Shown here: in pieces, positions 4,923-48,400 of the stretch
Layout: every line of letters starts with the position of its first letter
Position numbering within the stretch: position 1 is the first letter of the stretch
Assembly (NCBI GenBank): GCA_964106645.2
Contig: CAXKZF020000137.1
Strand: one strand, 5' to 3'
From: Podarcis pityusensis
Taxonomy: Eukaryota
DNA length: 64,000 nt
Position numbers and translations under genes: made by a program
Notes under the pieces: model-generated
Told to the model about the DNA's origin: nothing
The model's database searches: none
Seen by the model: only the letters and a program-made list of their open reading frames with translations

Positions 4923-4970
4923 CCGCGACCACGCCAACAGCACGCAGGCCACGAACGCCAAGGAGTCATC

Positions 4971-6814: not shown

Positions 6815-6909
6815 GCCCCCCACAAATCCCCAGGCGCACACCGATCGCGCACAAGGGATCCAGGCGATGAGCGGGTCTGATGATCGAGCCGCTCGCCGAG
6901 AGCCTCATA

Positions 6910-6928
6910 ATGTGAAGAGCGCACACAT
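6910..6928. promoter_or_regulatory. TetR operator ATGT-N11-ACAT (copy 1)
   Basis: atgt gaagagcgcac acat upstream of tetR; same spacing at 7648, 9633 and 9668. Confidence 0.6.
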
Positions 6929-6948
6929 GAGCATGGAGGCGAGCACCG

Positions 6949-7548: not shown

Positions 7549-7647
7549 CCGGCCATCGCTGCAGGACCCTCAGCCACCTGAAGGCCCCGATCCGGGCCGC
7601 TGGCCGCGAACACCCTTGACCACACCTCGCCACCCCGACTATCCTTA

Positions 7648-7666
7648 ATGTTAACACTGCTTACAT
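7648..7666. promoter_or_regulatory. TetR operator ATGT-N11-ACAT (copy 2)
   Basis: ccttaatgttaacactgcttacattgagg, downstream of a ttgacc -35-like hexamer. Confidence 0.65.
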
Positions 7667-7754
7667 TGAGGAGGTCGGTCGTGGTTCTTCTGCACATTGA
7701 ACCAGCGAAAGCGGATGACCGCAGGGTGGGACGAGACGTCGGAGGGATCGTCTC

Positions 7755-8465: not shown

Positions 8466-8558
8466 GCGGTTCAGTCCCCAGCCACCTGCCAGCACCAACC
8501 GCGGTCGCTGGGCGACCTCGCAAGTACCCCACCGTGATCACAGAGAGGCAATGTTCCG

Positions 8559-9527
8559 ATGACCGAGCTACCGCCCCCCATCACCCCTTACCTCGAGCCC
8601 GAGGCGAAGGAGCTGTGCGAGCAGACCGATCCCCACCCGCGGATCTACGAGGTGCCCCCAGAGCAGGGTCGTCAGATCCTGCGTGACCTGCAGAGCGGCG
8701 AAGGCGTCGACCGACCCGAGGTCGACGAGGAGTGGGTAGAGGTCGACGCCGGGCAGTGGGGCACCGTGCGCACCCGCATCATCAAGCCCAAGGGCGCACA
8801 GGGACCCCTGCCCGTGGTGTTCTACATCCACGGTGCCGGCTGGGTCTTCGGTGACGAGGACACCCACGACCGCCTCTTCCGCGAGCTGGTGGTCGGCGCC
8901 GGAGCCGCCGGCGTCTTCCCCGTCTACGACCGCGCGCCAGAGAAGGGCTACCCCACCCAGGTCGAGCAGAACTACGCCGTCGGGCAGTGGGTGGTCCAGC
9001 ACGGGGCCAAGCACGGCCTAGACACCACCCGGATCGCCGTTACTGGCGAGTCCGTCGGGGGATGCATGTCCGCGGTCTTCGCCCTGATGAACAAGGACCG
9101 CGACGGCATCGACCTCAAGGCGCAGGTGCTGCTCTACCCGGTGACCAACGCCGACTTCGACACCCCGTCGTACCTGCAGTTCGCCGAGGGCTACTACCTC
9201 ACCCGCGACGGCATGAAGTGGTTCTGGGACGCCTACACCACCGACACCGCACAGCGCACCGAGAAGTACGCCTCTCCCCTGCAGGCCTCCCTCGAGGATC
9301 TCAAGGGCCTACCGCCCACGCTGGTCATCACCGACGAGGCAGACGTGCTGCGCGACGAGGGCGAGCAGTACGCGAACAAGCTCCGCGAGGCCGGCGTAGA
9401 CGTCACCTCGGTGCGAGTCGCCGGGATGGTCCACGACTTCCTGCTCCTGGACAGCCTGCGCGACACCAAGGCCGCCAACGTCGCGCGCGACCTCGCCATC
9501 GACGCGCTGGCGACCGCGCTGCGCTAG
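8559..9527 (+). CDS. HSL-family esterase/lipase
   Basis: HGAGW oxyanion hole, GESVGG, DVLRDEG, HDF. Confidence 0.9.
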   Translation: MTELPPPITPYLEPEAKELCEQTDPHPRIYEVPPEQGRQILRDLQSGEGVDRPEVDEEWVEVDAGQWGTVRTRIIKPKGAQGPLPVVFYIHGAGWVFGDEDTHDRLFRELVVGAGAAGVFPVYDRAPEKGYPTQVEQNYAVGQWVVQHGAKHGLDTTRIAVTGESVGGCMSAVFALMNKDRDGIDLKAQVLLYPVTNADFDTPSYLQFAEGYYLTRDGMKWFWDAYTTDTAQRTEKYASPLQASLEDLKGLPPTLVITDEADVLRDEGEQYANKLREAGVDVTSVRVAGMVHDFLLLDSLRDTKAANVARDLAIDALATALR

Positions 9528-9632
9528 ACCTTCACCCGCCGAGACCAGCAACATGCAGGGGCGTTCGAGGACCACACCTCGGGCGCCCCTGCCTGCGCAT
9601 GACGACCCATCGAGACCGATCCAGCACGCCAC

Positions 9633-9686
9633 ATGTTGACGTCGTCAACATGTGGGCCTACCCTCAGATGTAATCAGTGAACACAT
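9633..9686. promoter_or_regulatory. tandem TetR operators ATGT-N11-ACAT (copies 3 and 4)
   Basis: atgttgacgtcgtcaacat (9633-9651) and atgtaatcagtgaacacat (9668-9686). Confidence 0.6.
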
Positions 9687-9696
9687 GGAGGTTGTC

Positions 9697-10608
9697 GTGG
9701 CAGCAGGAGCAGAGCTGGTCGAGGTCGATCTGGGGGGCCGGCGTGTCCGGGTGCCCAAGGACGGGCTGTTCGCCAGGTACGCGATGAAGACCGACCTCGA
9801 GGAGGTCGTGAAGGACCCGCGGGTGCACAGCGTGGACTTCTTCCGCTCCCTGCCCAAGACGCAGGTGGAGTCGGCGATCGGGCCGACCTGGACCCCGAAC
9901 TTCTACTACGAGATGTCGAGGGCGCAGATCACCTACCTCGCGCCCCTTGGGGCCTTGCGTTCTCGCTTGCCTAAGGAGCTGCAGCCCCTTCAGGTCGCTC
10001 CCGGGATCGGCCTGTTCTCGGTGGTCTTCTTCCGCTACGACGTCTGCGACATCGACTTCTACACCGAGGCCACCGTCGGCATCGCCGTGCGTCCGGCTCG
10101 TCACGGCAAGCTCGGCGGCGCCGACCTGCTGTCCGGGCTGGCCAACGACACGATGCACGCCTACGTGCTCTCCCTGCCCGTCAACACCGAGATCGCTCAG
10201 ATCCGCGGTCACGACGGCTACGGCTTCCCCAAGTGGGTCACCGACATCGACGTCGACATCACCGACACCCGCACGACGGCCCGGGTCGGCAACGACCAGG
10301 GAGGCACCGACATCGCCCTGGACATCGCAACCCCTGCACAGAAGCGCAGCCAGACCGGCACCAACGTGTCGACCTTGATCTCCTACACCGAGCTCAACGG
10401 GGGCTGGCACTCCACGCTCAGCCAGACCAACACCTTGGCCTCCGGCAGCACCCTGCTGCCGCGAGACCTCTCTCTCGAGCTCGGCACGGGCCGGCTCAGC
10501 GACGACGTCCGTTCCCTGAGGCCCATGCGCGCTCTGCGACTCGACGTCGCCACCAGGTGCCAGAACGCCCTGCACATCCCCGTGCCGGTATCTGTGCCCA
10601 GCCGCTGA
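9697..10608 (+). CDS. acetoacetate decarboxylase family protein
   Basis: YVLSLPV, RGHDGYGFPKW Schiff-base lysine motif; GGAGG before the GTG. Confidence 0.8.
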   Translation: MAAGAELVEVDLGGRRVRVPKDGLFARYAMKTDLEEVVKDPRVHSVDFFRSLPKTQVESAIGPTWTPNFYYEMSRAQITYLAPLGALRSRLPKELQPLQVAPGIGLFSVVFFRYDVCDIDFYTEATVGIAVRPARHGKLGGADLLSGLANDTMHAYVLSLPVNTEIAQIRGHDGYGFPKWVTDIDVDITDTRTTARVGNDQGGTDIALDIATPAQKRSQTGTNVSTLISYTELNGGWHSTLSQTNTLASGSTLLPRDLSLELGTGRLSDDVRSLRPMRALRLDVATRCQNALHIPVPVSVPSR

Positions 10609-13423: not shown

Positions 13424-14732
13424 GGGACTGCTGAAGGTCTGGTTGTCACTTCCGGTTGGTGTTTCAGGCCGCGTGAGCGGCACGGTTGATGGTCTCAAAC
13501 TCGATCGGGGTGAGCTTGCCGAGGGCTCGTTGCCGGCGGCGGCGGTGGTAGGTCCGCTCGATCCAGATGACGATCGCCAAGCGGAGCTGGTCGCGCGTCT
13601 CCCAGCGTCGGCTGTTGAGCACGTTCTTCTGCAGCAGGGCGAAGAACGACTCCATGGCGGCGTTGTCCGCCGAGGAGGCGACCCGACCCATCGAACCCCG
13701 CAGGCCGTGCCGGTGCAGCGCGGCTACGTAGGGCCGGGAGCGGAACTGGCTGCCCCGATCCGCATGGACCACGCACCCGGCGACGACGTCGCGGCCGCGG
13801 CGGGCGATGGCCATCTCGAGGGCGTCGACTGCGAGGTGGCTAGTCATCGTCGAGTCGATCGAGTAGCCGACGATCCGGCGGGACCAGAGGTCCTTGACCG
13901 CGCACAGGTACAGCTTCCCCTGCGCGGTGGGGTGCTCGGTGGGGGCACCTCCCTGCACGAAGTGCTTGGGGGAATGTCGGTCAGCCACACCATGTTCGGG
14001 GCGGGTGCGGTGAAGTCCCGCTCCACGAGGTCGTCGTGCACCGGCGGGCCCGGCTTCATGGACCGACCCCGCTTCCTCGCGTGGGCGGAGACGATCCCGG
14101 CTTGCGAGCACACCTTCCACACCCGCCGCTCGGACACCTCGTGGCCGGCTTCGGCCAGCTCATCGGCGATGAAGCGGTACCCGAACCCCGGGTCGTCGCG
14201 GTGCACCTCGTGGGCGGCGTTGGTCGCGTACGCGTCGACCAGGTCCCGCTCGCTGACGGGGTGCGTACGCCAGGAGTAGAACGCCTGCCGGGAGAACCCC
14301 AGCAGCCCGCAGGTCACCGCGACGGGGATCCCGTCGGCGGCAAGGTCCAGGACCAGCGGGTAGGTCATTTTGGGGACTGGCCCAGCCTCAGGTTCGCCTG
14401 CGAGAGATACGCCGCGGCGCGGCGCAGGACCTCGTTTTCCTGCTCCAGCGCACGGTTGCGTCGTTTGAGCTCCTTCAGCTCCTCCGAGTCGGCCTTGGTC
14501 GTGCCGGGACGGATCCCGTCCTCGACATCAGCGGTCTTGAGCCAGTTCCTCAGGCACGACTCGGAGATCCCGAAGTCCTTGGCCAGCTGCGCGATCGGAA
14601 CTTCGCCCTTGCGGGCGAGCGCGACCACATCGTCACGGAATTCCTTGGGGTGGGGTGCAGGCATGTCGACATCCTTCCAGCGGGACCTCCCGGCCCCACA
14701 GAACTGGTGTCAACCGAACCTTCAGCAGTCCC
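13424..14732 (-). mobile_element. IS3-family element (orfA 14365-14664, orfB 13464-14368 disrupted)
   Basis: Terminal IRs gggactgctgaagg; orfA HTH; orfB DDE motifs WLTDI, HADRGSQF, DNAAMESFF. Confidence 0.92.
13941..13972. repeat. 32-bp REP-like hairpin insertion in IS orfB
   Basis: ccccc-aagcacttcgtgcagggaggtg-ccccc splits the conserved WLTDI/TEHPT motif and shifts the frame. Confidence 0.7.
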
Positions 14733-14748
14733 CTGCTACGTTCCGGTT

Positions 14749-15360
14749 GTGAAGTCACGATGGAAGTTCAGAGGGGTCCTAGTCTCAGCAGTGTTGTCCG
14801 CAGCCGCAGGGGTGGCCGCAGCTCCGACCGTGTCGGCAAATTTCAACGAGCAGGGGTGTGAGTACGGGGATCTCAAGCCGTGCCCCGCGAACAGCAGGCA
14901 TCACATCTTCTTCTACGGCGACAGCATGTCGAGCTCGGCGATCTTTTGGACCAACCAGACGCGCAGCGACAGTTACAACCAGGTGCCGGGTTGGTCCACG
15001 GCCACAACGGAGTTCCACGGCAGCTCCGACGTTCATATGATGCTCAGCCGCAACGGCGAGAACATGCCTCCGCGAGTGACTGGGTCCTACAACTGTTCCG
15101 AGATCGGATCGGGCCGCGTATGCGATCACGGGCATGTGCGAATCAGGGCCGATGATTTCGAGCAGCTCGCTGGGTCGCAGCGGCAGTCGATCCTCTGCCA
15201 CGAGATCGGCCACTCCGTGGGCCTGTCTCACCCTTCCGATGATGGTCAGGTCGATGACCCCAACGTCTTCCACTGCATGACCAACCGTTCCGATGTCTCC
15301 CCCGCGTTCCTGGGGTCTCACAACACCGGTCACATGCAGGACGAGAGCTACTACAACTAA
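14749..15360 (+). CDS. secreted zinc metalloprotease (metzincin/matrixin-like)
   Basis: Signal peptide, HEIGHSVGLSH zinc motif, Met-turn HCMT. Confidence 0.85.
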   Translation: MKSRWKFRGVLVSAVLSAAAGVAAAPTVSANFNEQGCEYGDLKPCPANSRHHIFFYGDSMSSSAIFWTNQTRSDSYNQVPGWSTATTEFHGSSDVHMMLSRNGENMPPRVTGSYNCSEIGSGRVCDHGHVRIRADDFEQLAGSQRQSILCHEIGHSVGLSHPSDDGQVDDPNVFHCMTNRSDVSPAFLGSHNTGHMQDESYYN

Positions 15361-15374
15361 AGGAAGTGCCCATC

Positions 15375-16016
15375 ATGAACAAGGCAGCACACCTTGTAAT
15401 CCCGTCCCTCCTAGCCGTGACGATGCTTGGTGGGTGCTCCTCCATCGAATCAGACGCGACGAGCGCGCCGTCGACGGTGTCTCAGCTTGGTGATGGCACC
15501 GACCCGGGTGTTCGCAGCTATTACGGGAAGGTCAGCGAGACGGTCTCGACCGTCGAGGAGGCCGGCGAGCACGTCACTGTCCTCGGCACGGTCCAAAGCG
15601 AGTCACACGGCACTCCAGGCGGTGAGATCGACTCCTTCACGACCATCCGCTCCATCACCGTATCTGTCGATGAGGTGCTCAACGGATCCCTCGCTGACAA
15701 GACGGTGACCGTGGAGAACGGGATGTACGAGTGGCGTGATGCCGGCGACACCAACGTCGCGAACGCCCTGAAGTACACCGAACCCGGTCAGCCGTGGCTC
15801 AAGCCCGGAGAGTCCGCGGTGCTGGTGCTGAAGAAGGTCGCGGCAGACAGCGGCATCGAGATCGTCGACTACCACAGCTTCGGCGAGGCGGGAACCTTCC
15901 GCGTGACAAACGGCAAACTCGTCGCAACTCCGCGCACCCAAGAGCTAATGTCCGCGCCCGGCCTACCCCACGAGCTCGTCGGCGACACCCCGGAGCAGGT
16001 CGAGCAGAAGCTGTAA
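15375..16016 (+). CDS. lipoprotein with predicted OB/TIMP-like fold, paralog of 41698-42330
   Basis: Lipobox LGGC; TVLGTV, VSVDEVLNG, LKPGESAVLVL pattern. Confidence 0.7.
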   Translation: MNKAAHLVIPSLLAVTMLGGCSSIESDATSAPSTVSQLGDGTDPGVRSYYGKVSETVSTVEEAGEHVTVLGTVQSESHGTPGGEIDSFTTIRSITVSVDEVLNGSLADKTVTVENGMYEWRDAGDTNVANALKYTEPGQPWLKPGESAVLVLKKVAADSGIEIVDYHSFGEAGTFRVTNGKLVATPRTQELMSAPGLPHELVGDTPEQVEQKL

Positions 16017-16056
16017 CCGCCCTCCTTGGGTAAAGTGCGCGGTCACCCACCTCTGT

Positions 16057-16512
16057 GTGTGGCCGTGCACGGGTGCAAGGTACCTAGGTCGTTGGACCCA
16101 GGCAGAACCTTCTTCCCGCTGCACACCACGCAACCCGTCGATGGTCTGCGCATCCGGTCTTCGACGCTCGCGGTCCAGACGTGCCCTAGATGGCACCGCC
16201 ACACGACCCTCCAAATTCAATCCAAACCCCTACCCGCCGTTCACCACCATGCCAGTCAGTGCAGGCGACGGGACGTGTCCCGCACAAAACAGGGACTCCG
16301 TCTCCGTCATTGGATTCGCACCCATCGAAAGCCGCAGCACACTTCTCGCCTTCACCTGCCAGTGGTACACCACCGATGGCAGGTACACCATCGCCGCGGA
16401 CGTACGGATGGACTCCACCGACCAATCCTGGTCTCTTTCCCCGCCCTACTGCCCCGGCGGGGCCTACGACCTCTGGTCAGTTCTCACCCACGAGCTAGGT
16501 GTACTCGGCTGA
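16057..16512 (+). pseudogene. matrixin-like metalloprotease remnant
   Basis: LAFTCQWY..ADVRMD..YDLWSVLTHELG then VLG-stop; zinc motif broken. Confidence 0.6.
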
Positions 16513-16899
16513 CACGTTCATGACAGTCGGCTGATCGGGGGCAGGCCTCCGATGGCTGAGTGGCGTCGGCCAGTGTTGTAGTACTCCAGCCACGGCGCCA
16601 GCGCCGCGGCCCGGTCGGTGTTGGTGAGGAAGACCTGTCGGTATGCCCGGCGGGGCCGATAGGTGGGTGAACCCTAGGTCGGTCCCGGCCTGGCTCGGTC
16701 GGCCCGATGCCAGACGATCAGCCTGGCAACTCTCCTCGGGCTCGCTTGGGGGCAAGACGGTCCGTGGCTGGGTTGCCTGACGGCCTGCCCCTCCCCCTTC
16801 GGTCGGTGGCTATGGCCTCGAAGGGGTCGATCCCGCGCTGCCCTCGGTCTCCTCCCCTGCCTGCTGGGCTAGAAAGGCTGCCCACGTAGATCGGAGCCC

Positions 16900-17529
16900 A
16901 TGCCGAAGCCGATCTCTCGACGCGCCGCGCTCTCGCTGCTGCTCGCCTCGACTGCCGCAACCTCGGGATGCGCCACCTTTGGACCCGACGAGAACTCTGT
17001 CGAGGGCCAAGCCAAGAAGGCCGCCGGTAACCGGCAGGGCTACATCTCCGGCGACGGCTCCGTTCGGCAGATCCCATCATCCGAACGGGACAAGCCAGTC
17101 ACGTTGACCGGCAAGACGCTAGAGGGCAAGACCTGGTCCGTGGGAGATCACGGCGGGTCAGTGGTCATCGTCAACCTGTGGGTGTCCTGGTGCGGGCCAT
17201 GTCACGAAGAAGCCCCAGACCTTGTCCGCGCCCACAAGGCGCTGTCGACCGGCGAGGACCCCGTGAAGTTCATCGGCATCGACTACCGCGAGAGTTCCAT
17301 CAGCACCGGCCGCTCGCAAGCCTCAGCGTGGGGACTGCCCTACGACTCGATCTTCGACGACGGCGGCATCACCGCCATCCAGATGAACGGAGTGCTGGCC
17401 ACACAGCCCTCCACCGCAGTCCTCGACCGATCCGGCCGAGTCGCAGCTGTAGCACTAGGCAAGATCGACTACGCCACTCTGCGCGACCTCACCAAAGACG
17501 TCCTGGCAGAGAAAACCCCCGCTGCGTGA
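16900..17529 (+). CDS. TlpA/ResA family thiol-disulfide oxidoreductase lipoprotein
   Basis: SRR twin-arginine signal with lipobox TSGC; NLWVSWCGPCHEEAP. Confidence 0.9.
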   Translation: MPKPISRRAALSLLLASTAATSGCATFGPDENSVEGQAKKAAGNRQGYISGDGSVRQIPSSERDKPVTLTGKTLEGKTWSVGDHGGSVVIVNLWVSWCGPCHEEAPDLVRAHKALSTGEDPVKFIGIDYRESSISTGRSQASAWGLPYDSIFDDGGITAIQMNGVLATQPSTAVLDRSGRVAAVALGKIDYATLRDLTKDVLAEKTPAA

Positions 17530-20330: not shown

Positions 20331-20603
20331 AATTGACCAACCCACCAGATGTGGAGTGCCCGTCCCGTGCGTCTAAGCGACTCTAAGATAATGCCGATAA
20401 TCTATCTTATTCAGGTAGAGCTCTCCCCGACTCAGGAACCTCACGGTTCGACGCCCTCTTGCGAGCACTTCAGTGCACGCGACCGCACCTGCCGGCGAGT
20501 GCCTAGGGCTTCGAGCTCCGACATACCTTCCCATCGATATCGAGCCGACTGACCAGCCGACGAAGAGCGCTGCGCACATCCCCCCACGGAGCCGCGATAT
20601 TCG

Positions 20604-20622: not shown

Positions 20623-20649
20623 TAAAGTCTACCAAGATTGACTACACTC

Positions 20650-20862
20650 ATGGTCTCCGAGCAACCCACTCGAAAAGTGCTCCGCCGACTACACGACGCT
20701 GGATGGTCGGTGGCGAGGACCCGCGGGTCACACAGCGTCTGGAAGTGCCCCTCCGGGCGTCACAGCGAGACGCTCCCGGACGGGCACAAGACCATCTCCC
20801 CGGGCGTGTATCGGAAGCTCACGAACAAGCTCGACGCCTGCACCTGCACCAAGGAGGACTGA
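20650..20862 (+). CDS. hicA: HicA family mRNA interferase toxin
   Basis: LHDAGW..RTRGSHSVW..PDGHKTISPG. Confidence 0.88.
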   Translation: MVSEQPTRKVLRRLHDAGWSVARTRGSHSVWKCPSGRHSETLPDGHKTISPGVYRKLTNKLDACTCTKED

Positions 20863-38518: not shown

Positions 38519-39107
38519 TGCCCTCAACCCAGACCCCGACATCATCGCGAGAAGTGCTCCTCAAAGGCACCAGCAGGTCGTGTGCTCGGTCAGAGAGAGC
38601 CTCCCACTCCGGGTCGAGGAGCTGCACCGCGAAACTCGACCCGGCGTGGTTGCAGTCCCAGATCAGGCCTCCGCGCCCGACACCGGTCCCCGTGATGCAG
38701 CGCCCCGCGTGCCCGAGCGCCAGTGCGAAGTCAGCGTCGTCGTCGGGGTCGAACTGATGCAGGTCGTGGTAGTCGAGCTCCATCTCGAGGAACTCGAGGC
38801 GACTACGCACCGCCGTGAGGGTCTCGGCCCCCAGCCACTCGGAGACGGCTGCCTGGCTGTCGTCCCCAACGGTGAACCACTTACGTCCCCTTCGCTCCCG
38901 GACGCGTCGCGTCACAGCACCCTCGGCGAAGGGCCACACCGCGAAACCCGCTGCCATGACGAGGAACCACCACCGGGCCGTCGGCGACTCCGCGGCGACC
39001 GCGCTAGCCAGCGTGAAAGCCACAGCTACGCCGATCGCTAGACCCTCCACGACGCTCTCCCCGAACCCTTCCCCGCTGCGCCAGCGGGAGTGGTCGTCGC
39101 GGATCAC
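38505..39107 (-). CDS. hypothetical membrane protein
   Basis: Two TM segments; GTGA coupling to the resolvase stop. Confidence 0.55.
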   Translation of the reverse strand: MIRDDHSRWRSGEGFGESVVEGLAIGVAVAFTLASAVAAESPTARWWFLVMAAGFAVWPFAEGAVTRRVRERRGRKWFTVGDDSQAAVSEWLGAETLTAVRSRLEFLEMELDYHDLHQFDPDDDADFALALGHAGRCITGTGVGRGGLIWDCNHAGSSFAVQLLDPEWEALSDRAHDLLVPLRSTSRDDVGVWVEGNAGS

Positions 39108-39757
39108 AGCGCGGTCCCCTTATTCGCGGGCTGACCATCGCCGCGGTACAGCGGCAACGTGCCCTCCTCCGGCCCGGCATCGAACCTCGCCAGCGACGCG
39201 ATCTCGCCACGCAGGACCCGCCCGACCACCGCCCGGGACAACCCCGTCGTCGACGCGATCACACCCTGAGTCTTGCCCGCCTCGGCCATCTCGTGCACGA
39301 GCCGGAACTGATGAGCCGTGACCCGCGACGGCCGCCCCAGCGGTCCCCCCTTCGCCCTGGCCGCAGCCAAAGCCGCACGAGTGCGCTCAGCAGTCATCTC
39401 CCGCTCGAACTGCGCCACCGACGCCATGACGTGGAATAGCAGCCGTCCACCCGGTGTGGTCGTGTCCAGCGACTCCGTCAGAGAGCGGAACTCCACCCCG
39501 CGGGTGCCGAGCTCGTCAACGACGCTGATGAGGTGCTTGAGCGACCGGCCGAGCCGGTCGAGCTTCCACACCGTCAGCACGTCCCCCGGCTCGAGGCGCT
39601 CGAGCAACCGGGCCAGGCCCGGGCGGTCCGTACGCGAGCCTGACGCGTGGTCGGTGACGATGTGCTCGTCGTCGACGCCCGCCCGACGCAGCGCGTCGAA
39701 CTGCATCGCCGTGTCCTGGTCGAGCGTGCTCACCCGCGCGTAGCCCCACTCAGTCAT
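39104..39757 (-). CDS. serine recombinase (resolvase/invertase family)
   Basis: GYARVST..Q, DRPGL, VWKLDRLGRS, AQFER, GRP, C-terminal HTH. Confidence 0.95.
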   Translation of the reverse strand: MTEWGYARVSTLDQDTAMQFDALRRAGVDDEHIVTDHASGSRTDRPGLARLLERLEPGDVLTVWKLDRLGRSLKHLISVVDELGTRGVEFRSLTESLDTTTPGGRLLFHVMASVAQFEREMTAERTRAALAAARAKGGPLGRPSRVTAHQFRLVHEMAEAGKTQGVIASTTGLSRAVVGRVLRGEIASLARFDAGPEEGTLPLYRGDGQPANKGTAL

Positions 39758-39887
39758 CGCTGGTCTGCTCCCGCTCACGACGAGCCCGCTCACGGCTCTT
39801 GTTGAGCCGCGGATAGACCCAGAAAGTGCCTGCCAAGCTGCCGATGGAGGCGCCCACGAAGGCCCACGGGTTGATGTACTCCGTCAT
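39750..39887 (-). CDS. small membrane peptide
   Basis: MTEYINPWAFVGASIGSLAGTFWVY plus basic tail. Confidence 0.4.
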   Translation of the reverse strand: MTEYINPWAFVGASIGSLAGTFWVYPRLNKSRERARREREQTSDD

Positions 39888-39944
39888 TTGACCCCAGAAC
39901 GCGATCACGACCCACGCTGACGGACTGGCCACACCCTGCTCCCC

Positions 39945-40068
39945 TGCTCGAAAGTCGCTAGTTTTCAACCTTTCGAGCAACATTATCAGTGAGCAGGGGT
40001 TTCGAACGCCTTTCAGAGCCTCCCGCGGCCCCTCCCCCGGGCTGCTCGAAAACGATCGTCACTGAGCC
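39945..40068. other. res site 1 (site I at 40043-40068 plus accessory subsites)
   Basis: tgctcgaaaacg-AT-cgtcactgagcc; IR tgctcgaaag-N15-ctttcgagca; directly upstream of the resolvase. Confidence 0.75.
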
Positions 40069-40161
40069 GTGCTGGATGCCCGCCTAGAATTGCGGGCATG
40101 GCGCGCCCTCGGGCATTCGACCTGCGTGACGTCGCCGCAACAGAGGTGCACGCTGCACCAC

Positions 40162-41533
40162 TGGGGCCTGACCCCGGTTCTTGGACACGCTGAATCCAGC
40201 ATCTGCTGGGGAAGCGAGATGATCGAGGGACCATGGCCAGGAAGAACTACTCCGAGGAGTTCCGTCGTCAGGCCGTCGACTTGTGTGAGTCCACGCCGGG
40301 GGCCACGGTCCGCGGTATCGCTGAGGACTTGGGCATCGTGCGCGGCACGCTGCGTCAGTGGCTCCAGGCGTACGGGACGGGCAAGAAGACCGCTGCCGAC
40401 GGGACGGCGACCTCCAGCCCCTTGCAGTCCAAGGCAGCGCCACCGGGGCCGAGCGAGGAGGAGTCGCTCGAGCAGCGGGTGGCTCGGTTGGAGGCCGAGA
40501 ACGCGACGCTGAGGGTGCAGGCGACGAAGCTGACCACCGAGCGGGAGATCCTGCAGAAGGCGGCCAAGTATTTCGCCGGGGAGACGCGCTGGTGAGTCGC
40601 TTCCAGTTCGTCGCCGACAACTCCGCCACCTACCCGGTGAAGCGACTGTGCGAGCTCCTCGAGGTGAGGCGCTCATCGTTCTACGCCTGGCAGGCAGGCG
40701 CACCAGCCAGGACCGAGCGGGCTGCGGCGGACGCCGAGCTCGAGACTCGGATCCGCAAGGTCCACACCGCCGACAACACCGTCGGAGCCCCGAGGATCAC
40801 TGCCGAGCTCAATGACGGGGTCCCCCAGGGCGAGCGGGTCAACCACAAGCGGGTGGCGCGGGTGATGCGCGCGGCCGGGATCACCGGATACGTCAAGCGA
40901 CGCAAGGTCCGCACGACCGTGCCCGAGCCGGCCGATCGGAAGGTGCCTGACCTGCTCAAGCGCGACTTCACCGCCACCGCGCCGAACCGGCGCTACGTCG
41001 GTGACATCACCTACCTGCCGCTGTCCCAGGCAGCCGGCGGTGGGAATCTCTACCTCGCGACCGTGATCGACTGCTACTCCCGTCGCCTCGTCGGCTGGGC
41101 CATCGCCGACCACATGCGCACCGAGCTCGTCGAAGACGCACTCAAGGCCGCCGCCACGACCAGAGGATCACTCGCTGGGGCCGTCTTTCACAGCGACCAC
41201 GGGTCGGTCTACTGCTCGAAGGACTACGTCACACTCTGCAGCACGCTCGGCGTCGCTCAGTCCATGGGCGCCGTCGGCTCCTCGGCCGACAACGCGCTGG
41301 CAGAGTCGTTCAACGCCGCCCTGAAGCGAGAGGTCCTCCAGGACGCCAAGACCTGGCCCGACGAGCTCACCTGCCGCCGGCAGACATTCAAATGGCTCAC
41401 CCGCTACAACACCAAGCGCCGCCACTCCTGGTGCCGCTACAACACGCCGATCACCTACGAGATCGCCGCCACCGCTACGCTGCAACCTGCTGCGTAATCA
41501 CACCCCGTGTCCAAGGACCGGGGGTAGGGCCCA
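40162..41533 (+). mobile_element. IS3-family element (orfA 40233-40595, orfB 40592-41497)
   Basis: TG..CA imperfect IRs containing cttggacacg; YVGDITY, HSDHGS, DNALAES. Confidence 0.95.
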
Positions 41534-41697
41534 CTGGATCGGTCGATGGAACTGGTCACCCATCACTACTCCGCCTAACTTGAGAGTTCGGCCTTGCCGG
41601 GCACATCGAGTACAAACCGGCCTCGCGCTCGTCCGTTGGGTCCAAGATGTATCGCAGGGGCGCGGTGCGTCCCGCACCATCTAGTTTGGGAGTCACC

Positions 41698-42330
41698 GTG
41701 ATCGCTCGACGTCATCGCGCCTTTCCCGTAGTCGTCGCCATGGCAGTGCTGGGTGGGTGCTCGGCCAGCGCGTCAGAACCGGCGCGCGGCTATGCCCCGT
41801 CAGGCGAGACCACTGAGGTGACGGACCCTGATGTGAGCGCCTACCAGGGCAGGGTCTTCGACTCGGTGACGTCGTTGGCTGAGGCGCGCAAGCACGTCAC
41901 GATCTTGGGCACCGTCCAAAGCGAATCCCACGGGGCTCCCGAGGGTGAGATCGATTCCTTTACGACTGTCCGCTCAATCACCGTGGCGGTCGACGAGGTG
42001 CTAGATGGGTCGCTCACCGCAGGCTCTATCACTGTTGAGAACGGGGTGTACGAGTGGGGAGCCCCTGGCGACAACGACGCAGGTACTGCCAGGCGCTACA
42101 CAGCGCCGGGTCAGCCGTGGCTCGAGCCGGGCGAATTGGCAGTCTTGGTGCTGAAGAAGGCTCCCGGCGGAGGGTCTGTCGAATACCACAGCTTTGGTGA
42201 GGCCGGAACCTACCGCGTCACGGACGGCAAGCTGGCTGCATCACCAAGGTCCCCCCAGTTGTTGTCGGTGCCAGGTCTCCCCCACGAGCTGGTCGGAAGA
42301 ACCCCGGCCCAGGTGGCAGAGAAGCTGTAG
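41698..42330 (+). CDS. lipoprotein, paralog of 15375-16016
   Basis: Lipobox LGGC; long identical blocks such as LGTVQSESHG, GEIDSFTT, YHSFGEAGT, PGLPHELVG. Confidence 0.75.
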   Translation: MIARRHRAFPVVVAMAVLGGCSASASEPARGYAPSGETTEVTDPDVSAYQGRVFDSVTSLAEARKHVTILGTVQSESHGAPEGEIDSFTTVRSITVAVDEVLDGSLTAGSITVENGVYEWGAPGDNDAGTARRYTAPGQPWLEPGELAVLVLKKAPGGGSVEYHSFGEAGTYRVTDGKLAASPRSPQLLSVPGLPHELVGRTPAQVAEKL

Positions 42331-42370
42331 GCAGGTGCGCACCTGGTGACTGCAACGTGCAGCATCACCA

Positions 42371-42485
42371 TGCTCACTGACGATGGTTTTCGAACGGCGA
42401 CACTCCATGTGCGGGGGTCGGCTCAGTGGGTTGTTCGAAAGTCGCCGCATAGAGATTCGAAAGGGCGGTGATCGAGATTCGAGCA
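42371..42485. other. res site 2, inverted relative to res site 1
   Basis: tgctcactgacg-AT-ggttttcgaacg followed by gttcgaaag, ttcgaaag and ttcgagca subsites. Confidence 0.7.
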
Positions 42486-42539
42486 GGCGTTTGGTGCAAC
42501 TCGAAGGGCGCGGGAGCGGGGGCGACCGTTGACCCCCGC

Positions 42540-43301
42540 CTAGCGCGCTCCGCCGACGTTGATCAGGGAGCCAACCTCAACGCGTGCATTGTGCTGCTTG
42601 CTAGCGCTGCGCGAAAGTTCGTGAGCCTTCGTCGCGTCTACTGGTCTGTTCAGCGTCACCTCGACGTCGTGGCACATGCCTGTGATGCTCGCGCTCTTCA
42701 CCATGTGGCCGTCGATCCCGTCTGTCAGCAGGTCGTCGGCGATTGCTCGGCGCTCGATCATGGTCGGACCCCGTGTGAACGAGACCGGGTAGGGGAAGTT
42801 CTCTTGGTCTGCGTAGGTCTGCAGCCGCTGTGCCTCCTCGTCGCCCGATCCGCCGAGCTGGATGACTAGCCCGTCGGTGGGGTCGGCCCAGTACAGTCCA
42901 CCGAAGGTCGACCCGGGTCGTGTCTTCTCGGCGGCTGTGAGGCGTTGTGCGAAGGAGTCGACGACGTCGAAGTTTGTGCCTAGGCCGCTCGTGCCCTCCG
43001 GGGTTCTGTTCGCTGCCGCATTGGGCTGGCAGGTTGGCGCCTGAACCCAAAGGGGTGCCGAGCCACCAGCCGCGGTTGAGATCGGGGTACCGCTTCGGGT
43101 TGGCTCGACAGGCGCAGAGACGGCGAGCACCGTAATCAGTGCGGCTGCGGCGGCCCCACCCCCGACGGCTGCAACGCGTCGCTTCTGCCGTCGGCGCGCT
43201 GCCGCGTTGAGGATGTCGCCGAACGGGGGAACGTGGTGACGAGCCAGCCCGGCCTCGCGGTCGATGAGCTCGCGGACGTCGTGGACGGACGGGGTGCTCA
43301 T
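42540..43301 (-). CDS. anti-sigma factor candidate with protease-prodomain-like extracellular part
   Basis: TGATG-coupled to ECF sigma; cytoplasmic helix, RRRQKRR, single TM, FGGLYWAD..LVIQL domain. Confidence 0.7.
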   Translation of the reverse strand: MSTPSVHDVRELIDREAGLARHHVPPFGDILNAAARRRQKRRVAAVGGGAAAAALITVLAVSAPVEPTRSGTPISTAAGGSAPLWVQAPTCQPNAAANRTPEGTSGLGTNFDVVDSFAQRLTAAEKTRPGSTFGGLYWADPTDGLVIQLGGSGDEEAQRLQTYADQENFPYPVSFTRGPTMIERRAIADDLLTDGIDGHMVKSASITGMCHDVEVTLNRPVDATKAHELSRSASKQHNARVEVGSLINVGGAR

Positions 43302-43781
43302 CAGGCTTCTCCTAGGTGCGTGCGCAGAGCGGTGCGGGCTCGTGACAGACGCGACTTGACGGTGCCCACGGGTACTTCGAGGTCTGCCGCGATCTCGTCG
43401 TCGGTCAGCCCGAGCGCGGCGTGACGGACAAGGACTTCGCTGTGCAGGGGTGGCAGGTCGAGCACGGCCTGCCACACCTCTCGGAGGCGGACGTCGTCAG
43501 GGGCGGCGCCGCCTTGCAGGTCTGGGTCGAGCATCGGCCGTAGCCGATGTCGACGGCGTGCGTCGTCGATGGCGAGGGCGGTACCCCACGGTGCGCAACC
43601 ACGCCACCGGCCGCTCGTACCGAGAGACCTTGTTCCAGTGCAGGACGAGGCGGGTGAACGTCTCCTGTGCGCAGTCTTCCGCGATCGCGCGCGACCCGCA
43701 CAGGACGGTCAGCTCAGCGACCAGGCGGGGGTAGTTGGCCGTGTAGAGCTGCTCGAGCTCAGCGGCCTGGTTCGTCCTCAC
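43301..43781 (-). CDS. ECF sigma factor (SigE/ECF39-like), frameshifted near 43530-43580
   Basis: AEDCAQETF..HWNKV, WLRTV, EIAADLEVPVGTVKSRLSRAR. Confidence 0.85.
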
Positions 43782-43789
43782 ACCTGTAA

Positions 43790-43817
43790 GACGCCGGCGA
43801 AGCGCAATCGTTCCATC
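43790..43817 (-). promoter_or_regulatory. ECF promoter GATGGAAC-N16-CGTC
   Basis: 8 nt before the GTG; same geometry at 45748-45775. Confidence 0.7.
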
Positions 43818-43876
43818 GGGGATCAGTTTGGTCGATCATCCCGACTGCTTGTTCGCCTCCTACAACCGGCCAGACC

Positions 43877-43902
43877 GGCTCACAACCGATCGTCATTGAG
43901 AA
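43877..43902. other. isolated res site I copy
   Basis: ggctcacaaccg-AT-cgtcattgagaa. Confidence 0.55.
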
Positions 43903-44066
43903 GATTCCGAGAGCGCCCTTCCCAGGCATCGGTGAAGACGATTTACCCCCGCCGATCACCCGTGAGGTGCGACGCTGTGCGCATGAGCTAAGGGGCGGGA
44001 CGGGGCGAGCTCAGCGAACGGCAGCACGGCGGACCGGCAGGGGCGATCGTTATCCCTGGGTGGGTC

Positions 44067-44291
44067 ATGGTCGCCTTGGCACTTGCATCGTTGGTGGTCG
44101 CGGCGCTCGGCGCCCAGGGGCTGCTCTCTGACGATCCAATCCTCGACGAGGGTCGGACGGGTCTGGCCCTAGTGCTATTAGTTGCAGTGTCCCTGTGCCA
44201 GGGCGCGATGAACCTCTTGAACTGGCGATTGCAGCAGCGCCGCATAAGCGACGAGGAACCTGCCCCAGTTCAGTCTCAATTCAGGCTCTGA
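44067..44291 (+). CDS. small membrane protein
   Basis: Two hydrophobic helices. Confidence 0.45.
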   Translation: MVALALASLVVAALGAQGLLSDDPILDEGRTGLALVLLVAVSLCQGAMNLLNWRLQQRRISDEEPAPVQSQFRL

Positions 44292-44322
44292 CGCCGTGCG
44301 AGCAAGAGACGCCCTCGACGCG

Positions 44323-44347
44323 TGCTCAGTGACGATCGTCGTGAGCG
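44323..44347. other. isolated res site I copy (hybrid arms)
   Basis: tgctcagtgacg-AT-cgtcgtgagcg. Confidence 0.65.
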
Positions 44348-44422
44348 ACTGTTCTCACTCCGCGGGGTGGGTGATCGAGGTCCTTGGGCGGTGACTGCTG
44401 TTCCCTTGAGGGGTGCATGCGC

Positions 44423-44941
44423 TTACTGACCCACGTCGAAGTACCCGATGACCGTCACGCCGTCGCTGCGGTAGACCGGCAGCCAGTCCACGGTCGGGGT
44501 GGGGATGGGCTCATCGAGGCTGGTCGGTGCGGGCTCCGCAGCCATGAGCTCGGAGTTGCGGAGGTACCCGTTGGCACCGTTCGTCGCGACCGCGGCGATG
44601 AGGTCGGGGGTGTTGGCCTCTGACGTCGAGTGGAGGTCGGTGCCGTACGACTCGCCCCGAGCATTCACTCCTGAGGCTGCTCTTGCGCCCTCGGAGTCCT
44701 CTTTGGGGAACGGGCGCCCGTTCGCAGGGGTGGGTGCAGGTCGAGCGGTGATAGTGACCGACACCGTCTCCCCACCGTCCGGCCCCATGTGAGTGGTCGG
44801 TGTTGTTGTCGGCGGTGGCGTCGTAGATCGCGCCGGAACAGCCACTGTCTCGCCGCCGCTTGCTACCGCCGCTCTCACTCCTGCTAGTGCTAGGACCGCT
44901 GCTGCCCCAGCGACGAACAGGCCCAGATTCCTATTGTTCAT
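44423..44941 (-). CDS. secreted/anchored protein with domain resembling the C-terminus of some BlaR1/M56-associated proteins
   Basis: NARGESYG..PDLIAAVATNGANGY..PVYRSDGVTVIGYF. Confidence 0.65.
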   Translation of the reverse strand: MNNRNLGLFVAGAAAVLALAGVRAAVASGGETVAVPARSTTPPPTTTPTTHMGPDGGETVSVTITARPAPTPANGRPFPKEDSEGARAASGVNARGESYGTDLHSTSEANTPDLIAAVATNGANGYLRNSELMAAEPAPTSLDEPIPTPTVDWLPVYRSDGVTVIGYFDVGQ

Positions 44942-45067
44942 CTCATCCCCCTGCCATCGGTACGGCGATACTCCTCGCGCCATCGCCTAGGAGCAAGGCC
45001 TCGAGATGGGGAGCACTACCCGCCGAATTGGCCGGAACCCTTAGCGGTTGCTCACGCTGACTGCTCT

Positions 45068-45580
45068 TTGCCTTCCATCACTGTGTTGCCAGCGAAGGTG
45101 GCTCCCGGTGGGTCCGTCACAGTCATAGGAAGCGCCTTCGGGACCGCGTGCAACGACGTCGGCCCAACTACGGAGCCAGCCCTTGGTGATCCCGCGATCG
45201 ACATCGACTTGATCCTGAGCGCTGACGGCAGCTCATCGACCCTTCTCACGGTCGACGCCGACGCTGACTACGCCTTCACCCAGCGCGTCACTATGCCTGC
45301 CGACGTCACCGGACCTGTGGAGATCTACGCGACCCTCGCCGAGGGCTACGACACGGACCCGGTCGCCCTCACGATCCAGGGGGTGCAACCCCCAGTCGCC
45401 GCGCCCTCAGCATCCACCGACGCCGCTCGGCCAGCTGTCGTCCAGACCGACTCTCCTCCCAAGAGCAAGGACAACGGGCCGGTTCTCCTGCTTGGTGGCG
45501 CATGCGCCATCGCGCTGATCGCAGCCGCCCTCGGCATCAGCCGCTCCCGTAGGCAAGGTGCGTCGCGTCCTGCCCACTGA
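45068..45580 (+). CDS. surface protein with C-terminal PAVVQTD-TM-basic tail; signal peptide damaged
   Basis: Ig-like VAPGGSVTVIG segment; upstream in-frame AHA-DC cleavage-like site without a start codon. Confidence 0.6.
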   Translation: MPSITVLPAKVAPGGSVTVIGSAFGTACNDVGPTTEPALGDPAIDIDLILSADGSSSTLLTVDADADYAFTQRVTMPADVTGPVEIYATLAEGYDTDPVALTIQGVQPPVAAPSASTDAARPAVVQTDSPPKSKDNGPVLLLGGACAIALIAAALGISRSRRQGASRPAH

Positions 45581-45643
45581 CGATCGTCACTGAGCAGGCT
45601 GCTGCCCCCTGCTTGCGTCCCATTCGACGATCGTCACTGCACG
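45571..45643. other. two tandem res site I copies
   Basis: tgcccactgacg-AT-cgtcactgagca (45571-45596) and tcccattcgacg-AT-cgtcactgcacg (45618-45643). Confidence 0.65.
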
Positions 45644-45747
45644 CCGCCGAGCGAGGGTAGGACCTCGAACCCTCGGACGAGGTTTCCCCCGCCAACGCGT
45701 GGGCCGCGATAGGCCGCTCCGAAGGCGTGAGCGAATAGTTAGGACTC

Positions 45748-45775: not shown

Positions 45776-45783
45776 ATATGGGC

Positions 45784-46266
45784 ATGAAGCTGCAGAACCG
45801 TGAGGGCTTGGCGGAGATCCACGCCGCCTTCTACCCCCGCCTGGTGGGTGAGCTGACCGTGGTGGCCGGCTCCCGCGCCTCGGCTGAGGACTGCGCTAAC
45901 GAGGCGTTCACCCGGCTGGTGCTGCACTGGAACAAGGTGTCGAAGTACGACAGTCCCATTGCCTGGCTACGCACCGTCGGATACCGGCTAGCGGTCGACG
46001 AGCAGCGACGAGCACGCCGTCAACTGGCTGTGCCTGATCACGAACCCTCCTCGAGGACCGGCGAGGACTACCCGCACTCGCACGAGATTTGGCAAGCGAT
46101 CCGCGACCTGCCCGTCAGCCAGCGTGAGGTCGTGGTCCGCCGAGCCGTGCACGACCTCACCGACGCCGAGATCGCCGAAGAACTCGCCGTGCCTATCGGA
46201 ACCGTCAAGTCGCGCCTGTCCCGGGCGCGCACCACTCTTCGCTCTCGTCTAGGAGAACCGTCATGA
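45784..46266 (+). CDS. ECF sigma factor (SigE/ECF39-like)
   Basis: AEDCANEAF..HWNKV, WLRTV, LPVSQREVV, EIAEELAVPIGTVKSRLSRAR. Confidence 0.92.
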   Translation: MKLQNREGLAEIHAAFYPRLVGELTVVAGSRASAEDCANEAFTRLVLHWNKVSKYDSPIAWLRTVGYRLAVDEQRRARRQLAVPDHEPSSRTGEDYPHSHEIWQAIRDLPVSQREVVVRRAVHDLTDAEIAEELAVPIGTVKSRLSRARTTLRSRLGEPS

Positions 46267-47027
46267 GCAGTCCCGATCTCGATGCCGTCCGCGCCCTCAT
46301 TCACGACGAAGCTGACCGTGCACGCCGAGACGTGCCCTCGCTGGACTCATTCATCGCGGCCGCGAGCACCCGTCAGCGCCGCCGCCGCCACGCAGCGCTG
46401 GGCGCGGTCTTGGGAGCAGCGGTCGTCGCTGGTGGGGTGGGGCTGACCGTTCAAGGGGGTGACCAACCCGCGGTCGTCAACGTCGCCTCGAGCCCGTCAT
46501 CGTCCTTCCAGTCCGCCGGCGCTGACCTCCCCGCGCATCCCCGTCCGGACCAGGTCGCAGATCACCTAGCCGAGACGCTTAACGGCCAGGGCCGCAACGG
46601 CGGCGCGACGTGGATCTCCGAGAAGAAGACACTCAACATCTACGTCTCTGGGCCTGCAGGCGGCAAGGACGCCGCAGTCGAGAAGACCCAGGCCCTGGGC
46701 GATGAGCTGACCAGTACCGTCGACTTCACCGTCACGGTGCACGCGGGGGGTCTGCGCTCGGAGGCGCAGCTGGTCTCGACGATGGAGGCCGTCGCCGACA
46801 CCAAGAGCTACGACCCGAGCGGGACGGTGAAGGTCCGCTCCGAGGTGATCAACTACGAGACGGGGAAGGTCGCGGTCGACGTGACCAGCCAGGCCGCCGC
46901 CGACATCGTCGAGAAGAAGTTCGGCGACGCCGTCGAGGTCCAGGTCAAGGCCCCCTACACCCAGGAAGAGATCGAGGAGATGTTCGGCGTGCTGTACAAG
47001 AAGGGCACCCCCGACCACGACTTCTAG
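46263..47027 (+). CDS. anti-sigma factor candidate; extracellular domain is a copy of the neighbouring protease propeptide
   Basis: ATGA-coupled to sigma; RQRRRR + TM; C-terminal ~150 aa align with the pro-region of 47101-48327. Confidence 0.8.
   Translation: MSSPDLDAVRALIHDEADRARRDVPSLDSFIAAASTRQRRRRHAALGAVLGAAVVAGGVGLTVQGGDQPAVVNVASSPSSSFQSAGADLPAHPRPDQVADHLAETLNGQGRNGGATWISEKKTLNIYVSGPAGGKDAAVEKTQALGDELTSTVDFTVTVHAGGLRSEAQLVSTMEAVADTKSYDPSGTVKVRSEVINYETGKVAVDVTSQAAADIVEKKFGDAVEVQVKAPYTQEEIEEMFGVLYKKGTPDHDF
46736..46985. repeat. 250-bp inverted repeat, left arm (partner 47779-48028)
   Basis: About 5 mismatches by manual comparison. Confidence 0.95.
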
Positions 47028-47045
47028 TAGCGGTCTCCGTACGCG

Positions 47046-47087
47046 CGATGAAGGGCCGAGTGTGCACACGCTCGGCCCTTCATCGCA
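47046..47087. terminator. bidirectional terminator hairpin between convergent genes (coordinates approximate)
   Basis: gcgatgaagggccgag-tgtgcacacg-ctcggcccttcatcgc. Confidence 0.75.
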
Positions 47088-47100
47088 TCTATTGCCTGCG

Positions 47101-48400
47101 TCAGTACGTGGCCGGGTATCCACCGAGCTCGTTGGCGATCGTTGCCGCCCGAGAGAACCGCGCGAAACCGCCCTGCACAATGCACGAGTGCACCCCAAGG
47201 GCGACGTAGTCGCCGCTATCCGGGGACGCGGAATTCGGCTGCGCCACGGTGCCACCAGAGTCACCGCCCACGGTGCCGCTGATGTTGGTCGTCGTCAGCG
47301 GCACACCGCAGGTGCGATCGAAAACCGTGCGGACTTCACCCGTATGGACGCCGCTGTTCGCTCCCGAGACGAGCAGGGGCTGGCCCACGCTCATCGTGTC
47401 GTCCCACGCGGTGATCGTGCGGCTGTCGCTGCCGTACCTGCCGCCGATCCAGAACTCGTTGCGGACTGAGTAGCCGTTGGGGGGGTCGATGATGGCCCCA
47501 TCGACGTACTCATCGAACTGCCAGGTGGTGCCCGCCGAGGTCGCGATGCCGTACCTCGGCCACTCGTACCGGTAGTAGGAGCTTGTGCCGAAAGCAAAGC
47601 AGTGGCCCGCAGTCACTAGACGAACCTGGCCTCCGCTGACCCACTTCAAGCCGGTGGTGCAGTTCGCGGTGTCCCCAGCGCCAGCGTCTGGAGTGCAGTC
47701 TCCGGTGGTCTGGACACACATTGCTGTGCCTCCATTCCACCCGTTGCTGGGCGAGTCGTTCCGGCGGTTCTCGACCTGGAACATCCTCTCGATCTCTTCC
47801 TGGGTGTATGGGGCCTTGACCTGGACCTCGACGGCGTCGCCGAACTTCTTCTCGACGATGTCGGCGGCGGCCTGGCTGGTCACGTCGACCGCGACCTTCC
47901 CCGTCTCGTAGTTGATCACCTCGGAGCGGACCTTCACCGTCACGCTCGGGTCGTAGCTCTTGGTGTCGGCGACGGCCTCCATCGTCGAGACCAGCTGCGC
48001 CTCCGAGCGAAGACCCCCCGCGTGCACCTGCACCTTGACGTTGGACCCGCGGATCACCTCTGACACAAGCGTCTTGACCTTGTCCACAGCCGCGCTCTCG
48101 CCCAGGTCGGGGCCCGCCACGTAGATGTTGAGGGTCTCCTCCTCGGAGATCCACGTCGCGCCGCCATCGCGACCAAGGGTCTCAAGGGTGGCCTTGAGCT
48201 TCTCGGCGACCTGGTCAGGACGAGCAGCTCCCCACCTAAACGCCAGGGCCTCCTCAAAGCGGTCGATCTCCTCGACGGTCAGAGGACGGGTCGAATGGGT
48301 GATCTCGCGGGCGAGCTCCATCGTCATCGGCGGCTGAGGGTCGGTGTCGACAGCGGTGGCGGCGCCGCCAACGGCAAGAGTGGCGAAGGCGGCAGAGAAA
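47101..48400 (-). CDS. secreted S1 (alpha-lytic/streptogrisin-like) serine protease with propeptide; start uncertain, probable frameshift near 48398
   Basis: CTTG, VTAGHC, VDGAII, GGDSGG; in-frame signal-like FSAAFATLAVGGAATA upstream of the ORF-track start. Confidence 0.88.
47779..48028. repeat. 250-bp inverted repeat, right arm
   Basis: Reverse complement of 46736-46985. Confidence 0.95.

Follow-up and report, generated by a model that had tools for sequence, protein, structure and literature searches.

A small serine recombinase of Janibacter, of a kind normally used to separate joined plasmids, appears to swap whole gene modules (stress-sensing, surface and metal- or drug-resistance genes) in and out at short recognition sites, building cassette arrays much as integrons do but with a different class of enzyme. 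We analyzed a window of 64,000 nucleotides (contig CAXKZF020000137.1, assembly GCA_964106645.2), in which an earlier note had claimed that six resolvase crossover sites punctuate a run of gene modules. All six sites are present, and modules change partners at or a few bases from their central AT in related genomes. We favor a cassette array built by site-specific recombination at res site I (probability about 0.6), although this rests on comparative evidence without biochemistry, and both the identity of the enzyme that made each junction and the reuse of lone sites remain inferences.

The recombinase gene (39104-39757, minus strand) is intact and encodes a 217-aa protein of the resolvase/invertase family (PF00239, E 3e-46), which we call family A. 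It is 98% identical to a Janibacter melonis protein. The closest solved structure is Gin (E 6e-48, versus about 1e-29 for gamma-delta/Tn3). Close homologues sit on conjugative backbones encoding relaxase, coupling protein and ParA.

We wondered whether the six sites exceed chance expectation. Their central ATs start at 40055, 42383, 43889, 44335, 45583 and 45630; the earlier note had placed each 12 nt before the central A. Leave-one-out PWM scores were 30, 22, 24, 17 and 34 bits for the first five sites. No other position in the window scored as high, and at most 0.1 such hits per 64 kb are expected from shuffles. The sixth site scored 8.8 bits, which is background level, yet it is a junction where flanks switch between the window and three related loci (L181, L182 and L001; L numbers denote the related loci compared here). 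The sixth site is thus weak by motif but real by synteny. As the note had stated, there are no convincing copies elsewhere in the window. In the wider comparison, background amounted to 3 weak hits in 1.59 Mb of other loci and 0.1–0.4 per shuffled window.

Two of the sites belong to full res sites that are inverted relative to each other. The first, res1 (39944-40069, minus strand), comprises crossover site I (40042-40069, central AT 40055-40056) and four accessory half-sites, at +47, +60 and +76 (head-to-tail) and at +101 (inverted). The same spacing was found in 8 res1-type sites that either lie next to resolvases 63–100% identical or are orphaned. The second, res2 (42370-42487, plus strand, central AT 42383-42384), carries accessory half-sites at about +36, +48, +70 and +93. 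Strikingly, the res2 lineage was never seen next to a recombinase gene: tblastn found no resolvase adjacent to any copy. In both res1 and res2, three half-sites lie head-to-tail and one is inverted, an assignment made by motif without footprinting. This is not the Tn3 pattern, in which accessory sites II and III are each made of inverted half-sites (PMC12217951), although, as in Tn3-type systems, res lies upstream of the recombinase with site I distal and the accessory sites proximal. Tn3-type tnpA transposases are probably about 1000 aa; the longest ORF of the window is 826 aa and none of the large ORFs scanned (not every ORF was scanned) hit a Tn3 transposase or tyrosine recombinase family.

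The sites delimit a series of modules. Module A (40055-42383) has outer arms at both ends and carries a predicted lipoprotein gene (41698-42330, plus strand) with a lipobox-like N-terminus. Homologues of this protein were found at 60–66% only and this exact module was not found elsewhere. The earlier note had counted an IS as part of this module. However, the IS3-family element (40169-41526, plus strand; Pfam HTH_Tnp_1 and rve, terminal inverted repeats) is flanked by a 5-bp target duplication (40164-40168 and 41527-41531) and is a later insertion. Module B (42383-43890) contains the res2 accessory sites, a putative anti-sigma gene (42540-43301, minus strand) and an ECF sigma gene (43301-43781, minus strand). 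The sigma gene is frameshifted near 43575 but intact in L166. The anti-sigma assignment, also made in the note, rests on adjacency to the sigma gene and a sub-threshold NCBIfam hit. Module B is followed by a lone site I of the outer-outer type (43876-43903, AT 43889-43890), whose left arm travels with module B in L166 and with a related module in L195.

Module C, of 446 bp, also has outer arms at both ends and encodes a 74-aa membrane peptide (44067-44291, plus strand); it was not found elsewhere. The next lone outer-outer site (44322-44348, AT 44335-44336) has a 1-bp deletion in its right arm and lies between two convergent 3' ends. In L001, this right arm and module D are joined to a res2-type inner arm. 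Module D encodes a secreted Pro/Thr-rich protein (44423-44941, minus strand), and 44332-45052 is 94% identical to L001 8984-9704, where it is flanked by two sites. A possible decayed outer arm (45049-45065), below the PWM threshold, may separate modules D and E: L001 homology ends there and L001 has a real site 30 bp further on. Module E encodes a surface protein with a C-terminal hydrophobic segment and basic tail (45068-45580, plus strand); it gave no family hit and was not found elsewhere. Its stop codon lies in the arm of the next lone outer-outer site (45570-45597, AT 45583-45584), whose right arm has 3 different partners in the window, L081 and L001.

The last site (45617-45644, AT 45630-45631) lies 47 bp from the previous one and has the inner arm of a second family, family B, and a B-type outer arm. 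Its left arm matches the res of a 194-aa resolvase that is 39% identical to family A. Module F (45778-48327) follows, with an ECF sigma gene (45778-46266, plus strand), a putative anti-sigma gene (46263-47027, plus strand) and an S1-type protease gene (47101-48327, minus strand), the latter recognized by visible TAGHC and GDSGG motifs. Module F is 97.6% identical to L081 from the 45583 site and 83% identical to L181/L182 from the 45630 site. No site was found at its far end, and it occurs without a flanking site in the J. melonis M714 plasmid.

To test whether the sites are recombination points, we asked where synteny breaks between related loci. At least one end of every site is joined to different DNA. 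Of 33 alignment ends, 16 lie within 30 bp of a site, a zone that covers 4% of the region, although the ends are not independent. The inner end of res1 has 8 different partners in 8 loci and its outer flank differs in 8 of 8 loci, while the res2 end class was seen 8 times with 5 partners. Other breakpoints lie at the far edge of the accessory sites and are unexplained. The whole of module B recurs at 94% in L166, bounded by both crossover sites and abutting the res of a different resolvase. Likewise, a 4.25-kb cassette is shared at 97% by two isolate genomes (L194 and L195) with different flanks at both ATs, and L174 and L177 also share a module in different contexts. Strikingly, removal of a 2,560-bp chromate cassette from L177 restores the empty site of L178/L173 with no target duplication, and the circular junction of this cassette is a complete res2-type site. 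Two alleles do not reveal whether such an event was an insertion or a deletion, and several supporting loci are metagenome assemblies.

Independent arrays occur in other Janibacter loci: five sites in L195, seven in L001, four or five in L081, three in L191 and three in plasmid NZ_CP046475. Some have no recombinase nearby. Every junction class was observed: inner-outer, outer-outer, inner-inner and hybrids between the two resolvase families. Cargo is not limited to the envelope and signaling genes proposed in the note but includes chromate resistance and an ABC-F plus Tet(V)-like pair. PLSDB searches with res1, res2 and the whole region found only the M714 plasmid and IS3 relatives, and an exact search of viral contigs for a perfect lone site found nothing.

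Taken together, these results suggest a cassette array shaped by small serine recombinases of Janibacter conjugative plasmids and islands. We infer that the recombinase cuts at the symmetric AT, which allows both alignments. Normal alignment of two directly repeated full res sites would excise a circle carrying one full res, which can re-enter at another site I; in this model the recombinase-less res2 lineage plays the cassette-site role. Antiparallel alignment would give an inner-inner scar plus a lone outer-outer site, and the predicted reciprocal inner-inner junction is present at L195:7520. Modules with outer arms at both ends (A, C, D+E) are most simply circles with a lone site that were reinserted, and one inversion between res1 and a lone site would convert an L166-like order into the order of the window. 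We also infer that the enzyme can act in trans, since arrays without a recombinase exist. However, wild-type Tn3 resolvase disfavors inverted and intermolecular reactions about 1000-fold (PMC9943657), Sin needs activating mutations for site I x site I reactions (PMC2764113), and reuse of a lone site is argued from parsimony only.

Alternatively, the region may be a resolvase scar field, in which ordinary plasmid resolvases occasionally misjoin full res sites of successive plasmids and transposons, leaving lone sites as dead end products and orphan res sites as remnants. There is precedent for such shuffling: CinH recognizes foreign res sites (PMC9501444) and toxin-antitoxin modules are exchanged at the AT of res site I (PMC7157771). 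The L195 inner-inner product shows that lone sites can arise from two full sites, and decay is visible in the 1-bp deletion at 44335, the frameshifted sigma gene and truncated res2 copies. Yet three lone sites in a row need many separate antiparallel events if none is reused, and the res2 lineage has its own conserved geometry. Moreover, about 30 more distant actinobacterial resolvases with a clear site I rarely have even one extra copy, so arrays are not a generic by-product. We consider this explanation unlikely, but it is the strongest of the alternatives.

A multi-site inversion system (Gin/Min or shufflon-like) that mainly flips segments for phase variation of envelope and sigma genes is much less likely. 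The catalytic domain is closest to Gin, res1 and res2 are inverted in the window and in L001, and symmetric lone sites allow inversion. On the contrary, gene content and not only orientation differs in every locus compared, a filled/empty pair exists, the sites lie between genes rather than inside a variable gene, L081, L166 and L183 carry direct repeats, and resolvase-type accessory sites are conserved. Least likely of all, the palindromes could be transcription-factor operators, or the junctions could come from homologous recombination or assembly errors at short repeats. The sites are indeed intergenic palindromes and some supporting loci are metagenomic. However, 44335 lies between convergent 3' ends, 45583 overlaps a stop codon, and the motif is the site I found 115–300 bp upstream of each close resolvase homologue. 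Junctions share only about 7–15 bp, and switching is also seen among isolate genomes (L001, L081, L173, L181, L182, L194 and L195).

Among known systems, the pdif analogy fits better than the integron analogy; the earlier note had offered both. The pdif modules of Acinetobacter plasmids are self-contained gene modules between roughly 28-bp double-stranded sites, shuffled among plasmids with a recombinase possibly in trans, a mechanism also inferred from comparisons (PMC9501444). However, pdif uses the host tyrosine recombinases XerC/XerD and a 6-bp spacer, whereas the array sites have a 2-bp center and part of them carry accessory half-sites. A separate dif-like site lies at about 20390-20420. 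Like an integron, the array has a recombinase gene with an adjacent site and a variable cassette array on one side, and a cassette can be precisely present or absent. It is not an integron: the enzyme adjacent to the site is a serine recombinase rather than IntI, the sites are 28-bp two-arm palindromes around AT with no central variable region rather than attC-type folded sites, and the multi-gene cassettes have mixed and convergent orientation. A sigma-70 promoter scan was empty but is uninformative for Actinobacteria. In Tn3-family transposons, homology also breaks at the AT of site I, with passenger genes abutting site I and tnpR abutting the accessory sites (Lima-Mendez 2020, PMC7157771), but these are single exchanges inside transposons that have tnpA, without arrays, lone sites or orientation reversal.

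Resolvase shuffling by CinH-RS2 of Acinetobacter plasmids (Kholodii 2001, 2004, as described in PMC9501444) likewise involves a plasmid small serine resolvase without a transposase that recognizes res sites of other systems and moves modules, including metal resistance, between replicons. The Janibacter loci show arrays of 3–7 sites, lone symmetric crossover sites, inner-inner scars and a recombinase-less res lineage attached to cargo, in an actinobacterial host. Literature searches, which did not cover most subscription papers including Kholodii 2001, found no report of serine-resolvase cassette arrays or of Janibacter plasmid resolvases. A more far-reaching possibility, which we regard as tentative, is a dedicated serine-recombinase counterpart of integrons in Intrasporangiaceae and Dermacoccaceae. 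In this view, an enzyme with naturally relaxed topological control would use res1 as a platform and the res2 lineage and lone symmetric sites as cassette sites, and would routinely integrate, excise and invert cassettes, including resistance genes, across plasmids and chromosomes.

The motif lets such arrays, which annotation misses, be found systematically, and a naturally relaxed small serine recombinase with a 28-bp site would also interest genome engineering. The natural outer-outer and inner-inner junctions test the rule that small resolvases are resolution-only and need accessory sites on both partners. The likely role of the array is modular exchange of ECF sigma/anti-sigma sensing units, envelope proteins and resistance genes. 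It would add, in Actinobacteria, a third route to cassette arrays beside integrons and pdif modules, one that already carries chromate resistance and an ABC-F plus Tet(V)-like pair in a human-derived isolate.

We first asked whether the six crossover-type sites are real. They exist as described in the earlier note, with the central AT at 40055, 42383, 43889, 44335, 45583 and 45630. A leave-one-out matrix scored the first five at 17-34 bits, with no equal elsewhere in the window and at most 0.1 expected per 64 kb. The sixth is at background level by motif. The adjacent gene (39104-39757, minus strand) is an intact PF00239 recombinase, 98% identical to a Janibacter melonis protein and, among solved structures, closer to Gin than to Tn3 or gamma-delta resolvase. 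No Tn3 transposase or tyrosine recombinase was found among the large ORFs scanned.

Each site consists of two arms around the AT. At full res sites, the arm facing the accessory region (inner) differs from the arm facing away (outer). The lone sites at 43889, 44335 and 45583 have outer-type arms on both sides. The first full site (res1, at 40055) has four accessory half-sites at +47, +60, +76 (same sense) and +101 (inverted), and this arrangement is conserved across resolvases that are 63-100% identical. The second (res2, at 42383) has a related but distinct spacing of about +36, +48, +70 and +93. This is not the inverted-pair pattern described for Tn3 (PMC12217951). Sites of the res2 type occur in at least ten places and never next to a recombinase gene. 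The distances between successive sites are 2328 bp (about 965 without the IS), 1506, 446, 1248 and 47 bp, and gene orientation is mixed. The IS3 element, which the earlier note had grouped with the lipoprotein gene as one module, is a later insertion with a 5-bp duplication.

We next tested by comparison with related loci whether DNA modules change partners at these sites. Close homologues of the recombinase lie on conjugative plasmid or island backbones with relaxase, coupling protein and ParA; an AAA ATPase gene of the window (857-2163), 91% identical to the J. melonis M714 plasmid, shows that the window contains more plasmid-derived DNA. The inner side of res1 is shared by eight loci, while the outer side differs in all eight. 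A further class of breakpoint, which remains unexplained, lies at the far edge of res: the DNA between the last accessory half-site of res1 and the recombinase start (window about 39750-39940; 9810-10004 in L001, the locus of J. melonis NBRC 107855) differs between loci and holds unrelated small membrane-peptide ORFs that overlap the start codon. The sigma/putative anti-sigma module B (42383-43889) is found at 94% identity in the related locus L166, bounded by both crossover sites and directly against the res of a resolvase only 82% identical in DNA; its sigma gene is intact there. Module D, which encodes a secreted protein, starts at the 44335 AT in L001, where it is joined to a res2-type inner arm. 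A 30-bp segment next to the 44335 site (44286-44315) also recurs, at 97% identity, inside a different L001 module (8234-8263), which is unexplained.

Module F, the sigma, putative anti-sigma and protease module, starts together with the 47-bp spacer at the 45583 AT in another J. melonis (L081, 97.6%), where it is joined to res2. Module F alone starts at the 45630 site in two more Janibacter genomes. The left arm of that site matches the res of a second resolvase family (family B), which is 39% identical to the first. In one locus, L181, a Tn5053-like tniA/tniB/tniQ/resolvase unit and merA-merR (2080-9835) lie directly left of the family-B site where module F begins, so res-hunter transposons and this array share a target. 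Within module F, the C-terminal part of the putative anti-sigma (46542-46985) and the N-terminal part of the convergent protease (47779-48222) form an 84% identical inverted duplication that is conserved in other strains; a shared extracellular domain may couple the two proteins. Overall, 16 of 33 alignment ends fall within 30 bp of a site, against 4% of the region, although these ends are not independent. Where the arms differ, the crossover narrows to the AT plus at most five bases.

We wondered whether similar arrays occur independently. In J. massiliensis-like loci, a 2,560-bp chrB-chrB-chrA cassette is present (L177, L174) or absent (L173, L178). Joining the L177 flanks reproduces the L178 empty site exactly over 62 bp, and the circular junction of the cassette is a complete res2-type site. 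Janibacter sp. Y6 (L195) has five sites over 7.7 kb with three sigma/anti-sigma pairs and no recombinase within the locus. These sites include a lone outer-outer site and an inner-inner junction, the reciprocal product expected from antiparallel exchange. A 4.25-kb cassette of this array is 97% identical in strain UYMM211, with different flanks at both ATs. Another locus, L191, has three sites, one of which is a lone palindrome of family-B outer arms. The gene set that lies between crossover sites in L191, a peptidase-like gene, a lipoprotein paralogue and a redoxin gene, is also present in the window (14650-17529; lipoprotein paralogue 72% to the module A cargo), but here without detectable sites and next to IS3 elements. 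In plasmid NZ_CP046475 of J. melonis M714 (L171:8563-12178), an ABC-F ribosomal-protection-like gene and a Tet(V)-like MFS efflux gene (both below the NCBIfam cut-offs) lie between two crossover-type sites, followed by a res1 with no recombinase gene. Calidifontibacter indicus has two direct sites. About 30 more distant actinobacterial resolvases have a clear single site I about 145 bp upstream and rarely an extra copy; single extra site-I-like copies near distant Mycobacterium and Paenarthrobacter resolvases (L021:7974, L058:5425, L043:8354) are possibly small versions of the same process. The background in unrelated loci is 3 weak hits in 1.59 Mb. Some of the supporting loci are metagenome assemblies, but switching is also seen among isolate genomes.

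The comparisons show partner exchange at site I, precise presence or absence of a cassette, all junction classes, and hybrids between the two resolvase families. Small serine recombinases cut at the central 2 bp and rotate (PMC9943657), and a symmetric AT is compatible with either alignment. We infer that direct full sites excise res-bearing circles that can reinsert, that antiparallel events make lone and inner-inner sites, and that modules with outer arms at both ends were reinserted through lone sites. In this scheme, one inversion between res1 and a lone site turns an L166-like order into the order of the window. The weak step is the reuse of lone sites, and the array may instead be a field of dead scars. 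Tn3 resolvase selects about 1000-fold against inverted and intermolecular reactions (PMC9943657) and Sin needs mutations for reactions between two copies of site I (PMC2764113), so either these enzymes are relaxed or rare events have accumulated under selection.

The array works like pdif modules and, loosely, like an integron, but it fails the defining tests for both, and it is also not a Tn3 transposon. A separate, conserved dif-like site, with two arms around a 6-bp spacer, lies near a HicA toxin gene (20638-20862) at window 20390-20420 and in four related loci (L001:12303-12338, L081:16863-16924, L169:9394-9429 and L171:25331-25378). The window copy has lost one base in the XerD-like arm. 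This suggests that pdif-type modules also exist in Janibacter plasmids, for which a literature search found no actinobacterial report. The nearest precedents for the array itself are resolvase shuffling by CinH-RS2 (PMC9501444) and the exchange of toxin-antitoxin modules at the AT of res site I (PMC7157771). We found no description of multi-cassette arrays, lone symmetric sites or a recombinase-less res lineage in the literature we could search, which omits most subscription journals.

Taken together, these results show that the feature is real and support, with refinements, the interpretation of the earlier note, in which the resolvase repeatedly captured or shuffled envelope and signalling modules at site I; that this particular resolvase made all the junctions is inferred. 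We are highly confident that the sites are resolvase crossover points that shuffle modules. With a probability of about 0.62, and without assigning particular junctions to one enzyme or a direction to the events, we favor the fuller cassette model, in which excised modules reinsert at such sites, over a field of dead scars.
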